Positions 19,581-64,000 of a stretch of 64,000 bases of DNA are shown piece by piece. Positions within the stretch are counted from its first letter, which is position 1. Each line of letters opens with the position of its first letter. The DNA is from Eutreptiella sp. 'Long Island Sound 2002' (taxonomy: Eukaryota; Protista; Euglenida). The notes beneath the pieces are model-generated. The model was given only the letters and a program-made list of their open reading frames with translations, was not told the origin of the DNA and made no database searches. Made by a program: the position numbers and the translations under genes. The stretch covers positions 58,218,001-58,282,000 of the forward strand of contig OZ038378.1 in NCBI GenBank assembly GCA_964036045.1, in the 5' to 3' direction.

Positions 19581-20004
19581 AAACACCAACGGCAACAGCA
19601 TGCCGCGGCATACCGCGTCCCCATTTTTTGGGAGCTGTTGGTGGGGGTTTTGAAGCATGCCGCCGCATGCCGCACCAAGCCAAAGCTGTTACACGGCGGA
19701 CTTTTTTTTTTAATACATGTAAAACCTTCGGACCCTTTGTTGCACAGATGTATGTCAATAAAATGGACAAGAAACGAAAATGTGACGAGGAGGAGTAGAA
19801 ACACGCCCAGTTATGAGTTGAATCAACAGTGTTGACATTTGCACGGGGTTAGGGCATGTGATTCACTGTGTTTTGGTCTGGTTTTTGAAACGTGTGCCGC
19901 TCTCGGAAAAAGATGGTACCGTTGACCAACAGTTTGAAGCATGCCGCAGCGTGCCGCACCATGCCACAGCGAGCCAAAATTTTCTTGGGGGCTGGTGGTG
20001 CCTG
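19581..20004. mobile_element. 424-bp non-satellite insertion in Sat85
   Basis: Flanked by cttgtgggc at 19572-80 and 20005-13 (possible 9-bp TSD, but this is also the satellite core). Internal duplicate tttgaagcatgccgc.gc.tgccgcacca. Confidence 0.45.
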
Positions 20005-23000
20005 CTTGTGGGCCACTGTTGATTTTGTGCTCCGCTTTCAACCTTTGCCGACCCCTCAAACGGCAAGGGCTATATAGCCACCACGCCCGTTTGTGGGCGA
20101 CTTCCAATTTGTGATTTTGTCCCCCGCTATGAAGCAGTAGGGACCCCAGATGGGACGGGTTATGTAGCCACCACATCCGACTTCTAAATTGCCCCCTACC
20201 CTAAAGTGTTGGGGACCACTCCGACGGCAAGGGTTATGTAGCCACCAGGCGCACTTGTGGGTCACTTTTGATGTTGTACTCCCCTTTGAAGCGTTGGTGA
20301 CCCCTTAGATGGCAGAGGCTATATAGCCACGAGGCCCAAATGTGGGTTACTTTTAGTATGTGATTTTGTCCCCCGCTCTGAAGCATTAGGTATCCCAGAT
20401 GGGACGGGCTATGTAGCCACCACACCCAATTGCGGGCGACTTTTGAATTGTCCCCTGACCCAAAGCGTTCAAGGCCACCCCTACAGCAGGGTTTACGTGA
20501 CCACTAGGCCCACTTGTGGGCCACTTTCGATTTTGTGCTCCGCTTTGAAGCACTGGGGCCCCTTCAGACGGCAAGAATTATGTAGCCACCGGGCCCACTT
20601 GTGGTCCAATTCTGATTTGGTCCCCCGCTTTGAACCACTTCGGCACCTCAGGTGGCAGGGGTTATATAGCCATCAAGCCCCCCTTGTGGGCCATTGCGAA
20701 TTTTGTCCACCGCTTTGACGTTTTGGGGACCCCCCCCCCCCCGCGACGTTAGGGGTTATCTAGCAACCAGATCCAATCGTGGGCCACTTGTGATTTTGTC
20801 CCCCGCCCTCAAGCATTGGGGACCTCCCATACGGTAGGTGTGAGCTCGCCACCAAGGCCACTTGTGTACAACATTTAAGTTTGTCCCCTGTTCCGCAACG
20901 TTGGGGACACTGCAGCCGGCAATGGGTATTTTGCCACCAAGCCCACTTGTGGGGCATTTCTGGTTTTTTTCTACCGCTCCAAAGCGTTGGAGATCAAAGA
21001 GACATGGCATGGGCCATGTAGCCACGAGGCCCAACAGTGGGCCACCTTTGATTTTGTCCCCCGGATGTAAAGCGTTGGGGGCACCAAACACGACATGGGT
21101 TATGTACCCACCAGTCCCACTTGAGCGACTTCTGGTTTTGTCCCCCACTCTGAAGCGTTGAGGACGCCCCAGGCTGTAGGGGTGATATAGCCACTTGGCC
21201 CAATTGTGGGCCACTTCTAATTTTGTCCCCATCCCCGAAAGCTTCGGGGACCCACCAAACGGCAGGGGTTATGTAGCCACCACACCCGTTTGTGGGCAAC
21301 TTGTGATGTTGTCCATCGGTCTAAAGTGTTGGCGTCCTCCCCAACGGCAGGGGGTATGTAGCCACTAGGCCCACTTGTGAGCCACCTGTGATTTTGTGCC
21401 ACAGTGTGAAGTGTTGGGACCCCTAGAGGGCAAGGGTTATGGAGCCACCAGGCCCACGTGTGGGCCACTTCAAATTTCGTCCCCCCGCTCAGAAGCATCG
21501 GGGACCCCCCAAACGGAAGGCTTTACGAAATCATGAGGCCCACTTGTGCGCCACCTCTGATTTTGTCCCCCGCTTTGAAGCTTTGGGGAACGCAAAGATG
21601 GTAGGGGTTTTCAGCCAACAGGTGCACTTGTGGGCCACTTCCCTTTTTTATTTCGATGTGAAGACCCTCGAGACGGCATGGTTTATGTAGCCATTTGGCC
21701 CACTTTTGAGCCACTTCTGATTTGCCCCCCCCCCCCCCCTCGCGTGCAGTACCCCCTAGAGGGCAAGGCTTATGTAGTCTAAGGCGTTAGAGACCCCCAT
21801 ACTATAGGGGTTATGTAGCCAACTGGACCAGTTGTTGGCCACTTCTAATTTTGTCCCCCGCCTTGAAGAGGTGAGGACCCCCGGTACGTAGGGATTATGT
21901 AGCCACTAGGGCCACTTGCAGGCCGCTTCTGATTTTGTCCCCTACCTTGCAGTGTTGGGGACCCCCTACATGGCAGGGATTATGTAGCCACTAGGCCCAC
22001 TTGTCGGCCTATTCTGATTTTATCCTGCTCTGAAGGCTACTAGTGCGCCACTTCTGATTTGGGCCCTTGCCGGGAAGCATTGGGCCACCCCCACACGGCC
22101 GAGGTTTTGTCGCCACCGTGCTCACTTGTGGGCTAGTGTTGATGTTATCTTGCGCCCTGAAGCGATGGGGACCCCAGAATAGCAGGGGTTATGTAGCCGC
22201 CATGCCCGATTTTGGGTCACTTCTGATTTTGTCCCCGCGCTTTAAGGGGTCGGGGATACTCCATACGGCCGGGGCTATGTACCCACCAAGCCCATTTGTG
22301 GGCCATTTGTGATTTTGTCCACCGCTCTGAAGCGTTGGGGACCCCTTAGACGTAAGGGGTTATGTAGCCACCGTGCCCACTTGTGGGCCACTCCTGTTTT
22401 TGTCTCTTGCTTTGAAGCGTTGTGGACCCCCCGGACAGCAGGGGTTAGGTAACCACCAAGCCCACTTGTGGGCCCGTTCTGATTTTCAACCCCGCTTTGA
22501 AGCGTTGGGGAGCCCCCAGGCGGCACGTTTTATATAGCCACTAGGCCCGATTGTAGGCCCTTTCTTATTTTGTTCCCCGGCCCCGAAGCGTCGCGGAACC
22601 CCTAGACATAGGGGTTATGTAGCCACCATGCCTACTTGGGGGCCAGTGATGATTTTCTCTCCCGTTTCGAAGCGTTGCCCCCCCCCCCCCCATGACTGCA
22701 GGGGTTATGGAGCCACCGGGCCCCTTTGTGGGCCACTGCTGATTTTATCCCTTGCTCGGAAGCGTTGGGGACCCCTACACTACCGTGGTCGTCTTGCCAC
22801 TATACCCCCTTGTGGGTCACTTTGATTTTTGTCCTCCTGCTCTTGAGCATTGGGGATCCCCCAAGCTGCAAGGGTGGTGTACCCAATCTGCCATATTGAA
22901 GGCCCCTACTAATCCTCCCCCCAGGTCCGAATTTTTGGGGAGCCGTCATGCGGCAAGGGTTATGTAGCCACCATCCCCGATTTAGGGTGCCTTCTGGTTT

Positions 23001-25825
23001 TGTCCCCGCGCTTTGCGGCGCTGGGGATACGCCATACGGTAGGGGCTATGAACCCACCAGGCCCATTTGTGGGCCATTTGGGATTCTGTCCTCCGCCCTG
23101 AAGCGTTGGGGACCCCCTAGACATAAGGGGTTATGTAGCCACCATGTGCACTTGTGGGCCACTCCTGTTTTTGTCTTTTGCTTTGAAGCGTTGTGGACCC
23201 CCCGGACGGCAGGTGTTGCATACCACCAAGCCCCTCTGTGGGCCCCTTCTGATTTTCACCCCCACTTTGAAGCGTTGGGGACCCCCTAGACGGCACGGTT
23301 TATATGGCCAATTGGCCCGATTGTAGGCCATTTCTTATTTTGTTTCCCGCTCCAAAGCGTTTGGGACCCTCGAGTCGGCAGGGTTTGTGTACCCGGCAGG
23401 CCCACCAATGGGCCACTTCTGATTTTGTTCCCCCGCCCGAAGTGTTGGGAACCCCTAGTTGGCAGGTGTTATGTAGCCACCATGCCCACTTGGGGGCCAG
23501 TGATGATTTTGTCTCCCGTGTTGAAGCGTTGGGTACCCCCCCATGAGGGCAGGGGTTATGGAGCCGCCGGGCCCACTTCTGGGCCACTGCTTAATTTATC
23601 CCCCGCTCGGGCGTTGGGGACCCCCGACACGGCCAGCGTCATGTTGCCACTAGGCCCCCCTGTGGGTCACGTCTAGTTTTGTCCTCCTGCTCTTGAGCAT
23701 TGGGGACCTCTCAAACAACAAGGGTGGCGTACCCAATGTGCCAACTTGAAGGCCCCTACCAAACCCCACCCCCCCGGTCCGAATTGTTGGGGAGCCCCCA
23801 TATGGCTGGGGTTATGTAGCCATCATGCTTAATTTTGGGTCATTTTTGATTTTGTCCCCACGCTTTGAGGCGTTGGAGATACGCCATATGGTAGGGGCTA
23901 TGAACCCACGAGGCCCATTTGTGGGCCATTTGTGATTTTGTCCTCCGCTCCGAAGCGTTGGGGACCCCCTAGACATAAGGGGTTATGTAGCCACCATGCG
24001 CACTTGTGGGCCACTCTTGTTTTTGTCTCTTGCTTTGAAGCGTTGTGGACCCCCCGGACGGCACGGGTTAGGTAACCACCAAGCGCACTTGTGGGCCCCT
24101 TCTGATTTTAACCTCACCTTTGAAGCGTTGAGGACCCCCCAGGCGGCATTGGGCCCGATTGTAGGCCATTTCTTGTTTTGTTCCCCGCTCCAAAGTGTTT
24201 GGGACCCTCCAGACCGCATGGTTTATGTACCCACCACGCCCACCAGTGGGCCACTTCTGATTTTGTCCCCCCGCCCCGAAGCGTTGGGGAACTCCTAGTT
24301 GAAAGGGGTTATATAGCCACCATGCCCACTTGGGGGCAAGTAATGAAATTGTCTCGTGTTTCGAAGCGTTGGGTACCCCCCCCCCACGAGGGCAGGGGTT
24401 ATGGAGCCACCGGGCCCACTTGTGGGCCACTGCTAATTTTGTTGCCCGCTCGGAAGCGTTGGGGACACCCTCCACAGCCGGGGTCATCTAGCCACTATGC
24501 CCCCTTGTGGGTCACTTCGAATTTTGTCCTCCTGCTTTTGAGCATTGGGGACCTCCCAAGCAGCGGGGTTGGCATACCCACCCTTCCAACGTGAAAGACC
24601 CTACGAATCCCCCCCCCCCCCGGTCTGAAGTGTTGGGGAGGCGCCATATGGCAGGGCTTATGTAGCGACCACTTGTGGGCCCATTCCGTGTTTGCCTCCC
24701 GCTCTCACGTTGGAGATCTCCCAAACGGCAGGGGCTATGTACCCACTAGGCCCATTTGTGGGCCATTTGTGATTTTGTTCCCTTACGTGAAGCTTTGGCG
24801 ACCCCTCGGGCATCAAGGGTTATCCAGCTACCGGGCCCACTTATGGCCCACTTTTGATTTTGTCCCCCAACTCTTAAGTGTTGGGGCACCCCCGACGGCC
24901 GGGGTTCCGGAGCCAATGCGCCAACTTGAAGGACGACAACGATCCCCCCCCCCCCCGCTTGGAAGTGATGGTGACCCCCCCCGGACAACGGGGGCTATGT
25001 ACCCATTGGCCCCACTTGTGGGCCTCTTGTGATTTTGTTCTCGCCCTGAGGCGTTGGGGACCCCCCACATGGCAGGGGTTATTTAGCCAGCCGGCCCACT
25101 TGTGGGCCGCCTCTTATTTTGTCCCCCCGCATTGAAGCGTTGTTATGTGGCCAATCCCCCCACTCGTGGGCCCCTTCTGATTCTGTCCCTTGCCTTGAAA
25201 CATTGGAGACCCCCCACACGGCAAGGGTTATGTAGCCACGAGGCCCACTTGTGTGACACTTCTGATTTCTCGCCCCCGCTTTGATGCGTTGGGGATCCCC
25301 CGGACGCTAGGCGTTATGTAGCCACCGCGCCCACTTTTGGGCCTATGTTGCCCCCCCCCCCCCCCGCATTCCGGACCCCTCAGGCGGTAGGGGTTATGTA
25401 GGTTATCATTTTGTGCCCTACCCTGAAGCGTTGGGGATCCCCAAGATGGCAAGGATTATGTGGCCAACAGACCCATTTGGGGGCCACTGCTGATTTTTCC
25501 CCCTGCTCCCCGCTCTGAAGCGCTGGGGCCCCTCAAATGGCATGGTTTATGTAGCCAGCAAGCCCACTTATGCCACTCCTGATTTTGTCTCCCACCTTGA
25601 AGCGTTGGGGACCCCCACACAAGGCGGGGGTTGTCTAGCCACCAAGCCCGCTTGTGGGCTACATCTGATTTTGTCCCCCGCTCAGAAGCGTTGGGGACCC
25701 CCTAGACGGCAAGGAGTATATAGCTAGCACGCCCACTTGTGGGCCACTTCTGATTTTTTCCCCCGCTCTCGAGTGTTGAGGACCCCCAAACAGACGGTAG
25801 GGGTCATGTAGCCAGCAGGCCCAAA
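20005..25825 (+). repeat. Sat85 block 5 (contains ~9-10-mer higher-order repeats)
   Basis: Marker ggggctatg.accca...cccatttgtgggccattt at 22271, 23042, 23894 and 24731. Confidence 0.95.
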
Positions 25826-54780: not shown

Positions 54781-55150
54781 GTGCACATTTGTGCCCTTGG
54801 TACACGCCAAAAGAACGCATTCCGTTCTTGCCTTGATGGCGCAAGAAGGCTAGAACGGAAAAAAGCCCCCCCCCCCCCCATTGGGGGGGGGGGTTTGGTT
54901 CTATGAGGGTTTCAACCGAAACCCATCTATCCGAACTCGGGAGCCCATGCTCTCTTTTTCAGAATTTCACTGTTTTCACCTGAATTCGGAGTGGGAAAAT
55001 TTTTCGTTGTAGCAGCGTTCTGGCACGGTCTAGCGAGCACAGTCAACGCTCGCTAGAACGTGGCTAGAACGATGTTAGAACGATATAAGTTAATGCCCAG
55101 CCACTCCTTAAAGACAAGCTGCCCCAGCTACCATGGCTAGCCGTGGCCAA

Positions 55151-57450
55151 TCACCGGAGGTAGGCCTCCGCCTCCTCCCAGGTGAGAAAAATGAGGTCCC
55201 CCGACACCCGGAAGGTGCCCCTCTCTTTCTCTCTCTTCCTCTTCCCCCCCTTCTTCCCCTTCTTCCACCGCTCCCCAATGGACCCCCTGCGACACCACCC
55301 ACCAATTCCTGTCACTTGGGGTGACGGTCCCCCCGTTGCCCCCCTCCGCCCAAGGGACATACCGGGTATCGCCCACACCCCGCACATTCCCGTAGGGGTC
55401 AGGGCCCATATTTTCGAGGGGGGTGGCCCGGGGTTGGGGGGGGGGGGTTAACCTTTGCCTTGGGCTTAGGAGAGGGTTTGTGTGTGTGTGTGGGGCGGGT
55501 GGTTCTTCCCTGCTACCCTTGAAGTGGCGGGGTTGGTTTTTGGGGGCCCTGGGGGGGGGGGGGGGGCTTGGGTACTGCTGCTGCTGCTCCACCGCCTGCG
55601 GCAGCCCCTGCTGCGGCCCACTTCCTCCCGCACCCTGGTCGATCTCCTGCGCCGCGGGTCTACCCCCCCCCCCCCCTTGCTCCTCCTCGCCTTCCACATA
55701 CCCAACCCGTACGGCACCGAGAGGGCCATGTTGGGGTCACTCCCCAACATGCGGCCCACCTCGGTTACCCGCACGAGGTATGTGCGCCACCCTCCATAGC
55801 GCCATTCGACCCGCACCCCGCGGGGGTCCTCACCGCACGTCTGCACCCTAGTCATCCGTGAGAAGAGAAACAAGAGGCATGTGTGTTCTAGCGACCTTCT
55901 AGGCAACTGTTCTAGCAACGTTCTAGCGACGGCCGCCTCGGTTTGGCCAGATGAACGCTGGAATGCTTCCCTGGATCAACGCTAGAACGCACTCAGCATA
56001 CCGTGCCTTGCGTGTCGAGGGTTGGGCGGATTGCCCCCAGGACCTTGGTGAAGGCGTCACGGGGGTTGGCGGGTGCGGTTGCGGGGGTCCTCCGGCTGCG
56101 CACTTGCGGGGGGTTTTAGGCTTGGGGCGGGAGGCAAAGCCGCGTAACAATCCGGCATACGACCCCCGGCCGGCCGCCAACCCCCATGATCTACGACCGT
56201 GTCGGCAACCACTCCCACGTCCTCCCCTCTACGTGCATGGCCCCCAGCCCCATGGCCTCCCATCCATGGCAAAGGAACCGGAAATTCCCTGCCCGCCCCC
56301 CCGTTCTTGACGTCGGGGCTGAAGACTTTGAATTGGGCCATTTCAAGCATCTTCACCCCCTTGTCGGCAGAGGGGACTACTTTTCCCTTCTCCCCCCCCC
56401 CCCCCGGCATTTCCGCCCGCCATTGCCATACCCTCGGAACCCCCCCAACTTGTAGGGGTTTGTCCGTGTGGACCCTCCGCTCATCCACCCACACCCACGT
56501 CCCGTGCCCCAAAATCTTGTGATGCAAGCGGTGCATCCGAACAGGGAGAGTCCAAACCGAACTCTCTCGCGGCAAGAGGGGGGGGATGTGGAGCCCTCAG
56601 GGCTAGGGCCACGCCAAGACGGTTGGGCCCCAGGGCATCTCCATGATGGCCCCCACCCTTTGGTTTGCCAAAAAACCCCTCAACCACGCTATGCTCATAA
56701 CCTCTACCTTTTCCTCCACCACCTCCGCCTCCGCCTCCTCCTTCACCTTCTCCTCTACCACCTCTTCTACCTCCTCCTTCACCTCCTCCTTCACCTTCCT
56801 ACCCCTCCCTACCCTCTTCCAACCGAGCCGTTGTCCTCTCCGATTGCTCCACATTCGCTTGCTTCTCCTTCGCCTTCTTCAGCGCCTTCTCCACATTCCC
56901 CCTTGCCCAGTCCGCGCGCTCCTCCTCCCCCGCCCTTCGCAAATGCCCCTCCTTCGCCTGCCACTCCCTCACCATTCCCTCCGCCCTCTTGGTACTGGTT
57001 GTGCCCCCAACAAACCGGAGAGCCTTATGAGGCTACCTCCAGCCCCTGCGGCTCCTCCAGCTGGTCGGGGGACAATCTTTGTTCGTGTTCCTTTCCCTTC
57101 CCCTCGTCCTCCACCACCACCTCCACCACCTCCTCCACCACGTCCTCCAGCTCCTCCTCCTTGAACGCGGCGGCAGATTTGAGGGGTTAGGGGTTGGCAA
57201 GGGAGGAGCAGGATGTGCGGCTTGGGGTTGGGGCTCGGGCTCGGGCAGGGGTTTGGGTTGCTGGAGTAGCTGCGCGAGCAGTTGCTACATTTGGACTTGC
57301 TACGAGAAAAGGGGCGGCACCGTTCTAGCGACATTCTAGGAAACCGTTCTAGCGGCGTTCTAGCGACGTTGTAGCGAGCAAACACTTCCTTAGATCAACG
57401 CTAGGACGCACGGCAAAATACACGCTCTAGCAGTTGTTTCACGAGATGGG
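55151..57450 (-). pseudogene. Accessory gene 2 of transposon copy 2
   Basis: MTRVQTCGEDPRGVRVEWR...LGSDPNMALSVPYGLGMW aligns with VKEVAVCGDDVRPIRVVWR...LAHDPALGLAMLRGLKEW. VSGDLIFLTWEEAEAYL aligns with VERQLIFGTAEAAEAHL. Putative introns at ~55858-56001 and ~57300-57420. Confidence 0.65.
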
Positions 57451-57949
57451 CATTTGGATTGGCCGTGATGATGAAAAATGCTTTGTCCAAGGTAAGCCTG
57501 CATGTGGCTCTGGCCCCTCCTCAACTCCATGGCATCCTTACCTGAGCATGGAAATTGTGACTGTATGCGCAACCCAAGACACATTACAATAGGCAAAAGT
57601 CCAATTCATACATTGTGTTTGCACACCGGCCTCCCTTTGGATGGCCGCCCACTTAGCCATGACACCTCATCCACCCCATCCCCTTCATGCCCCCCCCCCC
57701 CCCACCGATTGTTGTGCTCATTGTGCCCATATTTTAGAAAGCGGTTGATGCTTTGTACAATGTCGCCACAAAATATGGCCAACCCAAATGGCCAAATGTT
57801 TTGCAACATGGCATCTACATCACGCTCAAGGCTCAGTAGATACCATGATGTTGTACCAACGGTGCAATGACAGTAGCAATCCTCCGCCACTGTGGCACGG
57901 TTCAACTAGTTAGGACCTTGAAATGTACAATAGATGGCCTGCAGCAAGT

Positions 57950-59620
57950 CCCACCAGGATCCAAGCAGCAAGATACATACCCCCAAAAAACCTTGAAAAT
58001 GACCTCCAAGCGGCATAACAGGGTCGCGTACCCCTCAAGTTGGCCTTGACAGCCTCCTGGCAGCCCTTACCCTGTGTCCTTTTGCCTTTGCGTTGGCGCC
58101 CCTGGGGTTCATGATGAATCCAAGACAACTCTCCACCCGCTCAAGAGCCCAAGGCACTAAATCAAAAATTGGGGTTCGTAACAAGATAAGTACCTCCGAA
58201 AATCCCCGGACAATAACCGCAAATCAGAGTAATAGGGTTGGGAATCCCTTGAGTGGGCCTTAACCTTCCGCTAACCCCGCAGCAACCTTGACCCTAAGTT
58301 CTCTTGCCCTTGCCTAATGCCAAGGCACCTAGCAATATCCGGCCATGCCTCCAAAAAATTGGCCGTTTCTTCCCCATCCGGGGAAGCTGCTCCGTAAACG
58401 CTCCAACCTACATGCCTCTCCAACATGAGGACTTGCAGGTCCTCACGGAGCGAATGGGTTCCCCCCCGAACCTCCCGGTCAACAAACTCCCCCAACAAGC
58501 GGCCCATGGCCGTCGTGAAGTGCAAAATTCACAAGACCACCAAGAGATACAACAATTTCAAAATTCATTGCATACTGCAAACGGCGAACTGCAAAGGCGG
58601 CGTCCCAAGGAGCAAGGCCGTGTAGTGGGCCTCATTACCCTCCATGGTCCGCGGGATACCACTACCCTTCCAAGTCTTCCTTTCGGGTGTTCCATATCCC
58701 CTCGTTGGACATGGAGCCCACTTGGGGGCACGTGGACAGCCCGATCACCCTACTTGTCCACGGTTGATCCCCCCCCGAGGACCACTTGTGCCTCCTCCTT
58801 GGAGGCCCCCCATTGGATGAGGCACGCGTGGATGATCTCTTTCATCACCTAAACAAGAGACATTGGGGGTGGTGCATTTCGTTCGAGTCTAGCGTAGCCT
58901 AGCTTCTAGCGAGCGGTGTCCGAGGCTAAGTGGAACAAAACTCGAACAAGTGAAAGGCACTAGGTGCAAGGAGTACCTCCCAATGGCTCTTGCACAATGT
59001 CCCAAGGTTGTCCATTGCCTTGTCATCACAATTGGCTATGCTCAACACCCAAAGCCTTGTGGGGGAGCGGGCCATGCGGTTGAAGTTTGCCAAGGAGATG
59101 GTGAGTTGGGTCCCGTTGCCCGCGGCCACGGGGTAGGCATCTCCTTGGACGATGAACGTCAACGGGCAGGAACGATTGATTGACCCAGCATGCCCGGCCG
59201 AGAGAAGATGTACTTGACCCATAAGGCGAACAGCCATGAGACCCCGCTGGCCTTGGGCAACACCGTGGCAACGGGCTCATCCCATTCCACGGCGGCAACT
59301 GACTCCTTCCAATGGGCTTGAAGTCCCGCTCGGTGCAAATCGGCCGGGAGTATGGGCCACCGGGCACCGATGTGGTGGTACTCTATCTTGCGGAGCGTGT
59401 AGACGCTCTGAAAGGGTCCTCCACGAGGACTTGGGGGCCGGCAAGTTGAGCACATGTTTACACATGGCGGTGCGGGGGAGTAGGGAGGCGGTGTATGCCT
59501 CAATGCTGGCCTTGCATGCCTCACCGGTAGATTGGATGGAAGTGTCGGTGTTCACATATTGGACCAGCTATGGATATAGTAACGAAATGGGCTATCAAGC
59601 TTCAGACTTCAGACTTTTAT
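57950..59620 (-). pseudogene. DDE transposase paralog, spliced, disrupted
   Basis: PLTFIVQG-D-AYPVAAGNGTQLTISLAN (D at 59139-41); intron 58849-58976 (GAG|gtactc..ttgtttAG|) at the same position and phase as in copy 1; GG-D-QPWTSRVIGLSTCPQVGS (D at 58767-69); *ILHFTTAMGRL...AASPDGEETANFLEAW. Confidence 0.78.
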
Positions 59621-59879
59621 GGACCATCACCCTCAACCCCCCCCCCCTCCCCTGATGCTAGGCCTTGCCCCCCCCTTGAGAGCAGACTTTTGCTCCATGA
59701 CACGTTTTCATGCCCTCCCCCTATGTCACACTTTGTTATGGAAAATGGAAAACTTGGAAACTTATGACATGGAAAACGCCCCCCCTCGCAATATCATACT
59801 TCTCCCAGTGTCACCCACCAAAGGAGACCGGGAAATTGAGGGCATACTGGCAAGAACGGGGAAAGCTGGGAAATGGAAC

Positions 59880-61680
59880 CCCCCCCCCCCCTCTCAGTAC
59901 CCCCAGTCTAAATGTTTTTGCTATAGTTTCAATTTGATTATGCAGAACACCCTGTAGGTGTTTTGGTTGTTTGTGGTCTAGCCCTGTGCGCCTATGACCA
60001 TATACCCCTTCAATGATGAACATGCTGACAACAGCCGAGAAGAGGTTCTGACATGCTCGCTTTTGAATCCAATTACAATTTGCTGACCACAAGCCCCTTC
60101 AAGGACGGTGCATGACACTTGGCATATGTTGGCTCATGGGGGGATGTCCCTTTCCTTGGCTGCATTTTCAAAAGCTCGGTCCGCACAAAACAGGTCCTAA
60201 GAAAAAGGTCCCCGCAGGGGTCCTTACATTGACCCACACGTGACGGAGCATTGTGTCGTGCTGGACAATCCACGGCCCACAATCCACATCCCGTGAAACT
60301 TGGTGTGGGCCTCTGCGCTGTTGCCACCATCAGTCAGTCTTTCATGTTCGACCAAATGCGCACCATGTCCTCCAATCGCCAACAACCATTTTGAAAACCC
60401 TTGTTTGTCAATGTCATGTGCAAGCAACATACATGTGAGAAGGGGCTTTGTAGTCCAATTTGAATTTGATTTGTGTGATGTTTTTTTCGCGACCCTCTTA
60501 CTTACCCTTCGAGCATGCTTGCAATCTGCTGCAATATGCACCCCTCATGGTTTGTTGTCTATTTGTAGAAAGTATGGACAAGGATCTGGCAAGGACCATG
60601 TACAGAGAAACCACACCCCTATTCATGCTCTGTTTGCTGTGCTTCCCATGTTGACCTGCTTTGCTTTCCTTTGTGCTTTTTTGCCAAAAAGCATTCCGAA
60701 ACTACCACAAAGTAGGGAAAACACTGCCCTCCCCCTACCTTGTGCATGAGCATATGGAAAAGCCTGCCCCCCCTCCTGATATGTCATGTGTCATGTGGGC
60801 TATCATTTGTTTGATCGGCCTGTAGTTACCATGACCCTTTTATGTCAACCTGAATTCTATCCATACGATTTCTGTGAATGTAGGTAACATGTAGGTGTCA
60901 TGTACCCACCCTTTCCGCATCATTGTCCTGCTTGCAAGCCCTTCAGTGATGATGTCATTCATTTGTGCACCTTGTGGGGTTGCTCTGCCGATGTTGGATT
61001 TGGGCTGTGCCACAAACCCCTACAGGGACCTTTTTCTTAGGCCCTGTTTCGTGTCGCCAGAGACTTTGAAAAATCGCACGTTTTGTGCACTGAGAACCGC
61101 CCCTTGCGGATTCTTCAGCACATCAATGCGCTGCACAGCAGGTAGACGTTCAGGCATTTTGTGTGTTGAGAATGCCCGGGCCACCACAACAGCCTGTGTG
61201 CCATGCCATCAGCAGGGAGACAGGTCCAGTCTCCATGGCAGCCGCTCCGTGCCTCGGAGCGGCAGCCCCAAAATTTGCATGGGCACCCACGGCGAGTTCC
61301 TGAGGGCTCCACACCACTCCTCACAGGGTGTATCCGACCTTCACTTCCAAAAACAAGACATTTGAGAAGGGGTTTTGCTATGTGTCACATTTTCCTTGTA
61401 CCTACGTCCCTTCCGTGCTTGTCTCTCCTTTGTTGTGCATGTCTGTCTTGACGCAAAGGGAAATGAAATGTTGCAGAGCCCCCCCCTCTCTTTGTACGTG
61501 AAGTTTGAACTTTTTGGCTATCTTTTCAATGTTGAACACCCTTGAGGTGTTTAGGTTGTCTATGGTCTAGGCCTTGGCGCCTATGACCATATACCCCTTC
61601 AATGATGGACATGCTGGCTATAGCTGCGGAGGGGATTTGACATGTTTGTTTTTGCAGTCAATTACAATTTGCTTGCTCCC
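59880..61680. repeat. ~200-bp diverged direct repeats (59880-60090, 61480-61680) enclosing ~65-bp inverted repeats (60160-60230, 61015-61080)
   Basis: gcgcctatgaccatataccccttcaatgatg.acatgctg occurs twice. aaacagg.cctaagaaaaaggtccc occurs with its reverse complement. Confidence 0.65.
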
Positions 61681-61849
61681 ACCTGTGTCTGTGTATTGCA
61701 TAGGAGGCAGGTGTGCACTGAGCGTCTCTTACACATAGGGCACTCTTGTATTTTAAACCTCCCCCTTGAGGTGAGGAAGTGAGTCTCGGGTCTAGACCGT
61801 CGCGTCTCTGACCCAGACATTTGAGTTGGGCCTGCCCCACACCCACACG

Positions 61850-62620
61850 TTCATCTCCCACCCACTTCGGGCCGCCGAGCCGCACGAGTTGGCCCCTCGG
61901 TCCGCGGCCACAGCGCCCCGACCAGGGTCGTCGTTCATCCCCCAACCCACCTACTACGGGCCGCCGAGCCGCAGGAGTTGGCCCTCTGTCCCCAGCCACA
62001 GCGTCCCGAACAGGGTTGTCGTTCGTCTCCCTACCCACCTACTGCATGCCGCCGAGCCGCAGGAGTTTCGCCCTCGGTGTCGGCCACAGTGCCCCGACCA
62101 GGGTCGTCGTTCATCTCCCTACCCACCTACTGCAGGCCGCGGAGCCGCAGGAGTTCGCCCTGGGTCCCCGGCCACAACGCCTTGACCAGGGTGGTCGCTC
62201 ATCTCCCTACCCACCTACTGCGGGCCGCCGAGCCGCAGGAGTTCGCCCTCGGTCCCCGGCCACAACACCCCTACCCGGGTCCTCCTTCATCCCCCAACCC
62301 ACCTACTACGGGCCGCCGAGCCGTAGGAGTTGGCCCTCGGTCCCCGACCACAGCGTCCCGACCAGGGTGGTCGCTCATCTCCCTACCCACCTACTGCGGG
62401 CCGCCGAGCCGCAGGAGTTGGCCCTTGGGCCCCGGCCACAACGCCCCGATCAGGGTGGTCGTTCATCTCCCAACCCACCTACTGCGGGCTGCCCAGCTGC
62501 AGGAGTTGACCCTGAGTCCCCGGCCACAGCGCCACGACCAGGGTCGTCGTGCACATCCCAACCCATCCACTGCTGGCCACGGCGCCGCAGAAGCTTGCCC
62601 TTGGTCCCCGGCCGCCACGC
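61850..62620 (+). repeat. 88-bp GC-rich tandem repeat, ~9 copies
   Basis: gccgagccgc marker at 61874, 61963, 62051, 62139, 62227, 62315, 62403 and 62491. Confidence 0.92.
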
Positions 62621-62635
62621 CTCGACCTGGACAAC

Positions 62636-64000
62636 ATGCCCAACACCAAACGCAAAGGCATTGCACAAGGCAAAGGCCAAGGGCCTCCGCAAGGCAAAAG
62701 CGAAGGCCCTTCGCAAGGCAAAGGCCAAGGCCCTCCGCTGGGCAAAGGCCAAGCCCCTCCGCAAGGCAAAGGCCAAGGCCCTCCGCAAGGCAAAGGCAAG
62801 GGCCCTTCACACGGCAAAGGCCAAGCCCCTCTGCAAGGCAAAGGTGAGGCCCCTCTGCAAGGCAAAGGCGGAGCCCCTCCGCAAGGCAAAGGTCAAGGCC
62901 CTCCACAAGGCAAAGGTCAAGGCCCTCCGCAAGCCGAAGACAACGCCTGGACCTTTGGTGAAACCCTTGCCCACGTGGACTATGGCATCGACACAAACCC
63001 AATGGAGGGATTCACCACCCGTGGGGCCGATCGCGACGTGTATCTCCAGAAGGCATCCGTTGTGCACACTGTCCATGAGTGTGCCGCCGCCCGGAAGTGG
63101 GCATGGGAGCAAGGTGCCGTGAGGTGGCTTTGGTTTGGGCAGAAGGAGGACAAGAATGGCAACATGGTGCTCATAACACAATGGGTTGCTTAGACTGAAG
63201 TTTGGGGCAACTATGATTTGACCGATGGGGATTTCATCCATGGATGGGACATGGATCGGCCAAACTTGGGCGACCACATCGCACCGGCACCGGACTTCAT
63301 TGGCTAGGTGCATGGGGATGGCACCTTTGGCAACATGGTGACCATAGTTTGTTGGAACAAACGTCCCATTGTGCAGGAGCACAAGTATTGGTGCTGTGTC
63401 CTGCCCGACGAAGCAGCGTTCCGGGCGTTCCGCGACGAGATACGAACGGGAAGGCATGGAACGCGTTGCTCAATGCCACTCGGCAAGAACAACATGTGGC
63501 TGCCAGCCCTATGCCCCCTTGTGGCGCATCATAACCTGAACCCCTCCCAAGCCTTGGCTGTCCGGCAATGTATGGATGAGGGCGATGTTGTCTCCTCCAT
63601 GACTGGTGGAGCCGACACAGGGAAGTCGGAGACCGTGGTGGCTTGCATCAAGGCAGTGATGTGCCACCAAGGGCACTTCGACCCATGCACCCCGAATCCG
63701 AAGAAGCCAGGTTCTGTACATACCGGCAAGAAAGGTGGGGGGGGGCACCTGAGTACCACCCCCCTCGGGCATGCATCTTACTCACTGCCCCAACAAATGC
63801 ACAGGTTGACAACATGATGCGGCGGGTGATCCAGTCGGCTGAACGGGATCCTACATTTAGGCAGGAAGTTTTGAAGGATCATCCGGCGCGTTGGATGCGG
63901 CTACATGCTGCAAGGGGCCAAAACCCCACAAATTTGCGAGCCTACAACCACCCAACAGTCGAAGAGGCGCTTGATGATCATCTGGAGTGCAATGGCGCAT
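62636..64000 (+). pseudogene. UPF1/DNA2/SETX-like superfamily-1 helicase with N-terminal GKGQGPPQ repeats; disrupted and truncated by the window end
   Basis: Q-motif LNPSQALAV (63536), Walker A GGADTGKS (63605-28), motif Ia CILLTAPTNAQVDNMMRRV (63772-828). In-frame TAGs at 63191 and 63305 and a frameshift most simply placed in the G9 run at ~63737-45. ~12 x 24-bp repeats at 62665-62935. Confidence 0.72.

Follow-up and report, generated by a model that had tools for sequence, protein, structure and literature searches.

A family of probable giant hAT-type DNA transposons in the euglenid Eutreptiella sp. encodes a UPF1/Sen1-like helicase

The reading frame at positions 62636-64000 (+ strand) of the window, by which is meant the whole 64,000-nucleotide stretch of the Eutreptiella genome that was analysed (G000:C1:58218001-58282000), covers the 5' part of a gene for a UPF1/Sen1-like SF1B helicase. 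It lies in a dead, 3'-truncated copy of a family of 18-24-kb elements, which we assign, with a probability of roughly 0.85, to giant DNA transposons of the hAT type. The assignment is based on the termini of the elements, the size of their target duplications, a language-model similarity of their transposase and motifs recognized by eye. An earlier note, prepared from the letters of the window, had read the frame as part of a transposable element rather than as a housekeeping helicase, and that reading is borne out: the gene is multi-copy, and two complete copies enclose the helicase and a USP-fused transposase between inverted ends. The present analysis defines the exact termini and target duplications of both copies, identifies and classifies an intact helicase ORF, and provides data on selection and on the linkage of the two genes.

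Results

Two complete copies delimit the element

The complete copy on C6 spans 23,874 bp, has the ends CAGCCATGGGTATA and, inverted, CAGCTATGGGTATA, and is bordered on both sides by the 8-bp target duplication TAGTGCCA. The complete copy on C10 belongs to a different subfamily and spans 18,397 bp, with the same ends and a perfect 8-bp target duplication, CAGCACCA, on both sides. The 14-bp inverted ends (CAGCYATGGGTATA) match each other at 13-14 of 14 bases in C6 and C10, and are also found at window position 59565, where the window and the start of the C6 copy both read CAGCYATGG[G/A]TATA. Short heptamer repeats, (CAGACTT)2-3, lie beside both ends of the complete copies. Inverted ends beginning with CAG, together with 8-bp target duplications, are the signature of hAT elements, whose short terminal inverted repeats begin with CAG or TAG (YARNG).

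Between these ends, the elements are arranged in the order leader, 88-bp array, helicase gene, 41-bp satellite, second 88-bp array, two ORFs and the gene for the USP-fused transposase. The satellite is variable in length between copies. A walk through the C6 copy (L033-L035, L040) in the 3' direction from the helicase passed about 8 kb of satellite, the second 88-bp array, about 4.7 kb of further sequence and a 4.3-kb block with a sharp end, which is 83-90% conserved across many loci; the ORFs of this decayed copy gave no Pfam match. Near the 3' end, the C6 satellite flips its orientation (L033/L034, E about 19850-20380). In both complete copies, the next ORF block is again preceded by an 88-bp array like the one in front of the helicase (L042), and these arrays may be promoter or leader modules. 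The two middle ORFs of the C10 copy, at L042:4402-6186(-) and L042:6078-7340(-), encode 595 and 421 aa, respectively, and had no match in Pfam, PDB or Atlas; inspection of the 595-aa product by eye revealed an OTU-like Cys box / His box together with an HxD...H pattern.

The window holds the 5' part of a truncated copy

In the window, homology to the C6 copy begins exactly at the 5' terminal inverted repeat (59565-59578, + strand; CAGCTATGGATATA), and the same 14-mer is found inverted at the ends of C6 and C10. The presumed target site, TATTGGAC, flanks this inverted end at 59557-59564, and (CAGACTT)n heptamers occupy 59603-59616, just inside the 5' end. The 5' leader (59565-61856, + strand) is composed of two modules that meet at 61706: the stretch 59565-61705 occurs in one subfamily only and is common to L002-L007 and other copies, while the window sequence from 61706 onward is common to the whole family. 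Position 61706 was examined as a candidate 5' end of the element and rejected, since other copies carry at that point a different leader, homologous among themselves, which makes 61706 a junction between subfamily modules and 59565 the true end. The leader also contains a direct internal duplication of about 200 bp (59882-60084 and 61479-61673, 76% identity), and 176 bp of it (60135-60310) are in inverted orientation with respect to all other copies listed (about 20). A comparable case was seen in the C6 copy, where the 443 bp immediately preceding the USP-transposase ORF (L034, E 25104-25546) are inverted with respect to at least 17 others. No convincing inverted repeats flank either of these two private inversions.

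The leader is followed by the tandem array that had already been noticed ahead of the gene, with 8.8 copies of an 88-bp unit (61857-62627, + strand) that end nine bases before the helicase ATG. Downstream of the helicase, the 41-bp satellite runs for about 6.5 kb, from window-equivalent 66389 to 72952, where homology to the C6 copy also stops. Up to window-equivalent 102000, neither the 3' half of the copy nor its 3' end was found. What is left of the window copy extends from the 5' end to the satellite, by way of the leader, the array and the helicase pseudogene; the 3' half, and with it the transposase gene, is missing. These 13.4 kb, of which about 9 kb lie past the window end, are the 5' portion of a dead, 3'-truncated element, and the copy is itself junk, without function.

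The surroundings of this copy consist of other repeats. Upstream, it is adjoined by another repeat family (54789-59564; 8,639 first-look candidates), with blocks at approximately 54792-55157, 55154-57954 and 58312-59564. The copies of this family all stop at window position 59564, exactly where the 5' end of the hAT-type element starts, and its ORFs gave no Pfam match. On the other side, an unrelated 1-kb repeat (L032:2354-3362, window-equivalent 74354-75362; 5,132 candidates, 86-88% identity) carries an ORF whose product combines a Cys/His-rich, zinc-finger-like stretch with an acidic tail, again with no Pfam match. This zinc-finger-like ORF (L032:2347-3096) was evaluated as the transposase of the element and discarded as part of the unrelated repeat. 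Direct repeats at 54799-55035 and 75562-75802 were likewise rejected as LTRs, given that they are 71% identical and belong to the other repeat family. The earlier note had placed the gene within a predicted intron of an intron-rich gene, but no host exons or intron were found around the helicase, the immediate flanks of which are other high-copy repeats. No Pfam match was obtained for ten long ORFs from other parts of the window.

The window helicase is a privately decayed pseudogene

The helicase frame opens with an ATG at 62636 (MPNTKRKG) and continues, in a single frame, into approximately eleven GKGQGPPQ-like octapeptides encoded by 11.2 copies of a 24-bp tandem array (62666-62933, + strand); this array is also present in the intact helicase ORF, and its length is variable. 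A region of about 230 aa separates the octapeptides from the Q-motif region, which is followed by Walker A / motif I (TGGADTGKSET, 63602-63634, + strand; GGAGTGKSET in the helicase family) and, in another frame, by a motif Ia of the UPF1-like type (TAPTNAQVDN, 63784-63813, + strand). The change of frame falls in a run of nine G (63737-63745, + strand), and two TAG stops interrupt the frame further upstream, at 63191-63193 and 63305-63307 (both + strand). The earlier note had described the repeats, the Q-motif, Walker A and motif Ia, as well as the two TAGs and the frameshift, and every one of these features is present. The fragment contained in the window scores 30.0 bits for AAA_11 on its own (Pfam cut-off 27). 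The frame extends about 1.7 kb past the window, to approximately window-equivalent 65666 (L031:3666). For motifs II-VI the earlier note had pointed to the kilobases that follow, and in the next 20 kb (L031 and L032) motif II (FVDESS), motif III (CGDASQLRPY) and later motifs are indeed present, in a decayed frame with several more stops and frame changes.

In order to interpret these lesions, the window copy was set against a majority sequence of 30 copies, which was used for the analysis of frame and of dN/dS only and from which the window copy is about 11% diverged. The majority sequence is open at both TAG positions, presenting a Gln codon at the first and a Lys codon at the second. It is open over 292 + 649 codons, with its sole frame change at the poly-G run, where the length of the tract is uncertain; copy L021 and the intact ORF of L041 read straight through the run, which yields a Gly run in intact copies. 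The two TAGs, both private to the window copy, and the frame slip are therefore private decay, and neither introns nor recoding. Reading the slip as a short intron was rejected because it sits in a poly-G run through which intact copies read, and reading TAG as a sense codon was rejected because the family has CAG and AAG at these positions.

The helicase is not confined to this locus. A search of the organism's own genome at the DNA level, with a 1,061-bp helicase core, returned 376 first-look candidates, 43 of which were scored and showed 78-87% identity. The helicase protein, in turn, found 1,279 candidates, several of them with open frames of 1,000-1,300 aa. Within the subfamily of the window copy, every one of the 30 closest copies is broken.

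The helicase is a divergent UPF1/Sen1-like protein under purifying selection

An intact helicase ORF was identified in the C10 copy (L041:862-4260(-)). Its product, 1,132 aa in length, opens with about 120 aa of GKGxGPxQ repeats and contains a complete SF1B core, which is preceded by a region of about 200 aa and followed by a tail of about 280 aa; neither of these two flanking regions gave a family match. The core scores 50.8 bits for AAA_11 and 36.6 bits for AAA_12 (Pfam cut-offs 27), and the intact ORF and a 13-sequence alignment supply motifs I, Ia, II, III, V and VI as GGAGTGKSET, TAPTNAQVDN, FVDESS, CGDAGQLRPY, TLDQYQGLQAPVV and TLTSRAQSEL. The best solved relative of the intact ORF is a Sen1-like 5'-3' helicase (8ftm, E 1.7e-7), and the profile built from the 13 sequences reached, in the PDB, Sen1-like at 1e-12, Aquarius and DNA2 at about 1e-4 and yeast Sen1 at 0.01. 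In the full-length 1,132-aa protein, Pfam detected neither Pif1 (PF05970) nor an HUH Rep. The earlier placement of the protein with UPF1-type rather than Pif1-type helicases thus agrees both with its AAA_11, AAA_12, Sen1-like, Aquarius and DNA2 matches and with the lack of any to Pif1 or Rep. At Pfam E<=0.1, the 1,132 aa contain no CH zinc domain, Sen1 N-terminal domain, DNA2 nuclease, R3H or NF-X1 fingers, and, as far as sequence comparison can tell, the likeness to UPF1, SETX/Sen1, DNA2, IGHMBP2 and ZNFX1 appears to lie in the core only. An AlphaFold model of the helicase computed with the 13-sequence alignment had a pLDDT of 29.

Comparison of the 30-copy majority with the intact C10 gene over 941 codons gave a dN/dS of 0.43-0.44. 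The helicase gene is under purifying selection, a result that establishes constraint and not a role in transposition. The genome also contains a second lineage of the helicase, about 50% identical to the first at the protein level; it is represented by 1,693 candidates, and many of these have open frames about 1,352 aa long (e.g. C2:62092943-62095327 and C10:12902914-12905310). Both lineages are multi-copy and both retain all the motifs.

Relatives outside these elements were sought in two ways. A word search for helicase relatives gave matches only in ENA contigs, one of them 100% identical to a locus of the organism's own genome and representing the second lineage, with its identity of about 50%. 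A HMMER search against 1.84 billion representative proteins gave 377 matches at E<=0.001, and the 150 of these that were listed, 62-441 aa in length, look like gene-model pieces of the euglenid helicase family. No cellular relative or donor of the helicase is among these 150 of the 377 matches. Judged on the same 150 of 377, the family would appear to be a divergent, transposon-borne SF1B lineage that has so far been encountered only in Eutreptiella sp.

The helicase gene lies upstream of a USP-fused transposase gene

A 278-aa piece of the 4.3-kb block found 954 candidates in the genome, about 30 of which lie inside open frames of at least 1,475 aa. The product of an intact ORF (L039:1747-6330(-)), 1,527 aa in length, scores 25.8 bits for UCH (Pfam cut-off 23.9) and presents clear USP Cys- and His-boxes. 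In a language-model search, its residues 560-1380 fell near clusters of DUF4371, the FAM200-ZBED5 RNase-like domain and Dimer_Tnp_hAT, with values of 0.90-0.92, and a segment reading ...AVERAISLRGRF... resembles, by eye, the hAT C-terminal motif. Pfam finds UCH alone in this protein, with no hAT dimerisation (PF05699) or DDE domain, and the profile of the transposase family did not reach Hermes in the PDB. Taken together, the protein of about 1,530 aa resembles, at the sequence level, a USP-type deubiquitinase domain joined to a hAT-like transposase.

The two genes are linked at multiple loci. Of the 30 most intact transposase ORFs, 11 are preceded on the same strand, at a distance of 12-24 kb, by one of the helicase copies listed (e.g. 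C11:23.71/23.70 Mb, C6:97.28/97.27 Mb and C10:10.37/10.40 Mb); since this count draws on the 91 helicase candidates that were scored out of 1,279, the arrangement is present in at least 11 elements. At C5:119520671-119525300, no more than about 3 kb separate a helicase open frame (1,217 aa) from the USP-transposase open frame (1,358 aa) downstream of it, which suggests that there are also copies without the long satellite and the middle genes.

Discussion

Role of the helicase and alternative explanations

We infer from these observations that the helicase is an accessory enzyme encoded by the element, and not passive cargo. Helicases of the Sen1 type remove R-loops and act 5'-3' on DNA or RNA. 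A 5'-3', ATP-dependent DNA/RNA helicase of this kind could clear R-loops, or folded G-rich or satellite DNA, from long elements, and the cleared DNA would then be available for transcription, for the pairing of ends, for excision and for the repair of elements of 18-24 kb. That the helicase assists element transcription and mobility by clearing R-loops and G-rich or satellite DNA is our best guess, and we would give it about even odds. The stronger proposition, that giant euglenid hAT elements need a Sen1-like helicase of their own in order to move, along with the deubiquitinase or other accessory enzymes, is put forward only tentatively; if true, a DDE transposase would cooperate with an SF1B helicase of the same element in the cut-and-paste mobilisation of 18-24-kb, satellite-filled DNA, and the elements would form a new functional class of DNA transposon, and not hATs with cargo.

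The main alternative is that the helicase is a host UPF1-like gene that was captured by a hAT element and has no role for it. Capture of host genes by DNA transposons does occur, the transposition of canonical hAT elements such as Hermes and Ac needs no helicase, and most of the copies sampled here are broken. Such passive cargo is nonetheless made unlikely by the evidence for selection (dN/dS of 0.43 over 941 codons) and by the existence of two old lineages, about 50% identical and both multi-copy, in which all motifs have been kept. Furthermore, intact helicase ORFs of 1,000-1,300 aa adjoin intact transposase ORFs in several elements, and the 150 matches listed out of 377 in the HMMER search include no cellular donor. 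A different possibility is that the helicase, the arrays and the satellite form a separate repeat or mobile unit that merely adjoins hAT elements, as might be surmised from a window copy that has the helicase half without the transposase half, from a 5' leader that varies between subfamilies, and from helicase candidates (1,279) that outnumber those of the transposase (954). Against this composite, the two genes lie together within a single pair of inverted ends, bordered by a perfect 8-bp duplication, in C6 and in C10, the helicase half in the window starts with the same inverted end, and at least 11 further loci show no change in gene order or strand, so that we regard it as very improbable.

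The earlier note had itself named two outcomes that would have spoken for a cellular gene, namely a single-copy processed pseudogene of a helicase, or sequencing errors in a nested host gene. The absence of introns, and nothing else, favors them, and both are excluded for practical purposes, with a residual probability that we consider negligible. Copies of the gene, 78-87% identical, number in the hundreds; the one in the window differs from the majority sequence by about 11%, carries more frame changes downstream and has a transposon end at its start, with no poly-A tail or other retro-copy features seen. The helicase as an accessory gene of the element remains the preferred reading. Were it to act in mobility, SF1B helicases would be linked to DDE transposition, and this would help to explain how giant, repeat-laden transposons move and how this euglenid genome grew. 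On a more practical level, more than 1,000 candidate helicase copies in a 2.3-Gb euglenid genome mean that gene models labelled "UPF1-like helicase" in euglenid assemblies are, in hundreds of cases, transposon genes or their debris.

Comparison with known transposons and helicases

No published description of a hAT element with a helicase, and specifically of a hAT-type transposon with its own UPF1/Sen1-like helicase, or of euglenid hAT elements was found in the literature. A review of giant eukaryotic transposons has no hAT among those listed (PMC6431247), and the paper on the chromosome-level genome of Euglena gracilis gives bulk repeat classes only (PMC11252322). As regards accessory genes in hAT elements, the closest case in print is that of fungal hAT7 elements with TET/JBP genes upstream of the transposase (PMC12730594), which resemble the euglenid elements in that their accessory genes lie upstream of the transposase and on the same strand.

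With hAT elements in general, the euglenid family shares 8-bp target duplications, short inverted ends starting with CAG, short repeats beside the ends and a transposase that the language-model search places near hAT-derived proteins. Canonical hAT elements, however, are a few kb long and need the transposase alone, whereas the euglenid elements measure 18-24 kb and comprise an SF1B helicase gene, kilobases of satellite and a transposase that is fused to a USP domain and is not detected by Pfam hAT models. In a similar vein, the helicase has in common with the UPF1-like SF1B proteins (Sen1/SETX, UPF1, IGHMBP2, DNA2, Aquarius, MOV10, ZNFX1) the AAA_11 + AAA_12 core and motifs I, Ia, II (DE), III (GDxxQL), V and VI, but departs from them in its GKGxGPxQ head, in its strong divergence (PDB E 1e-7 at best) and in being borne by a transposon.

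To our knowledge, SF1B helicases in DNA transposition have so far been known mainly from Helitrons, which resemble the euglenid elements in being eukaryotic DNA transposons that encode their own SF1B helicase. The Helitron helicase is nevertheless Pif1-type and fused to an HUH Rep, and Helitrons have neither inverted ends nor target duplications; the euglenid elements, in contrast, have no Rep or Pif1 match and present both inverted ends and 8-bp duplications. Academ elements, which carry a putative helicase, would likewise be DDE-type transposons with a helicase of their own, with a transposase of another superfamily than that of the euglenid elements, in which the helicase is encoded by a separate gene.
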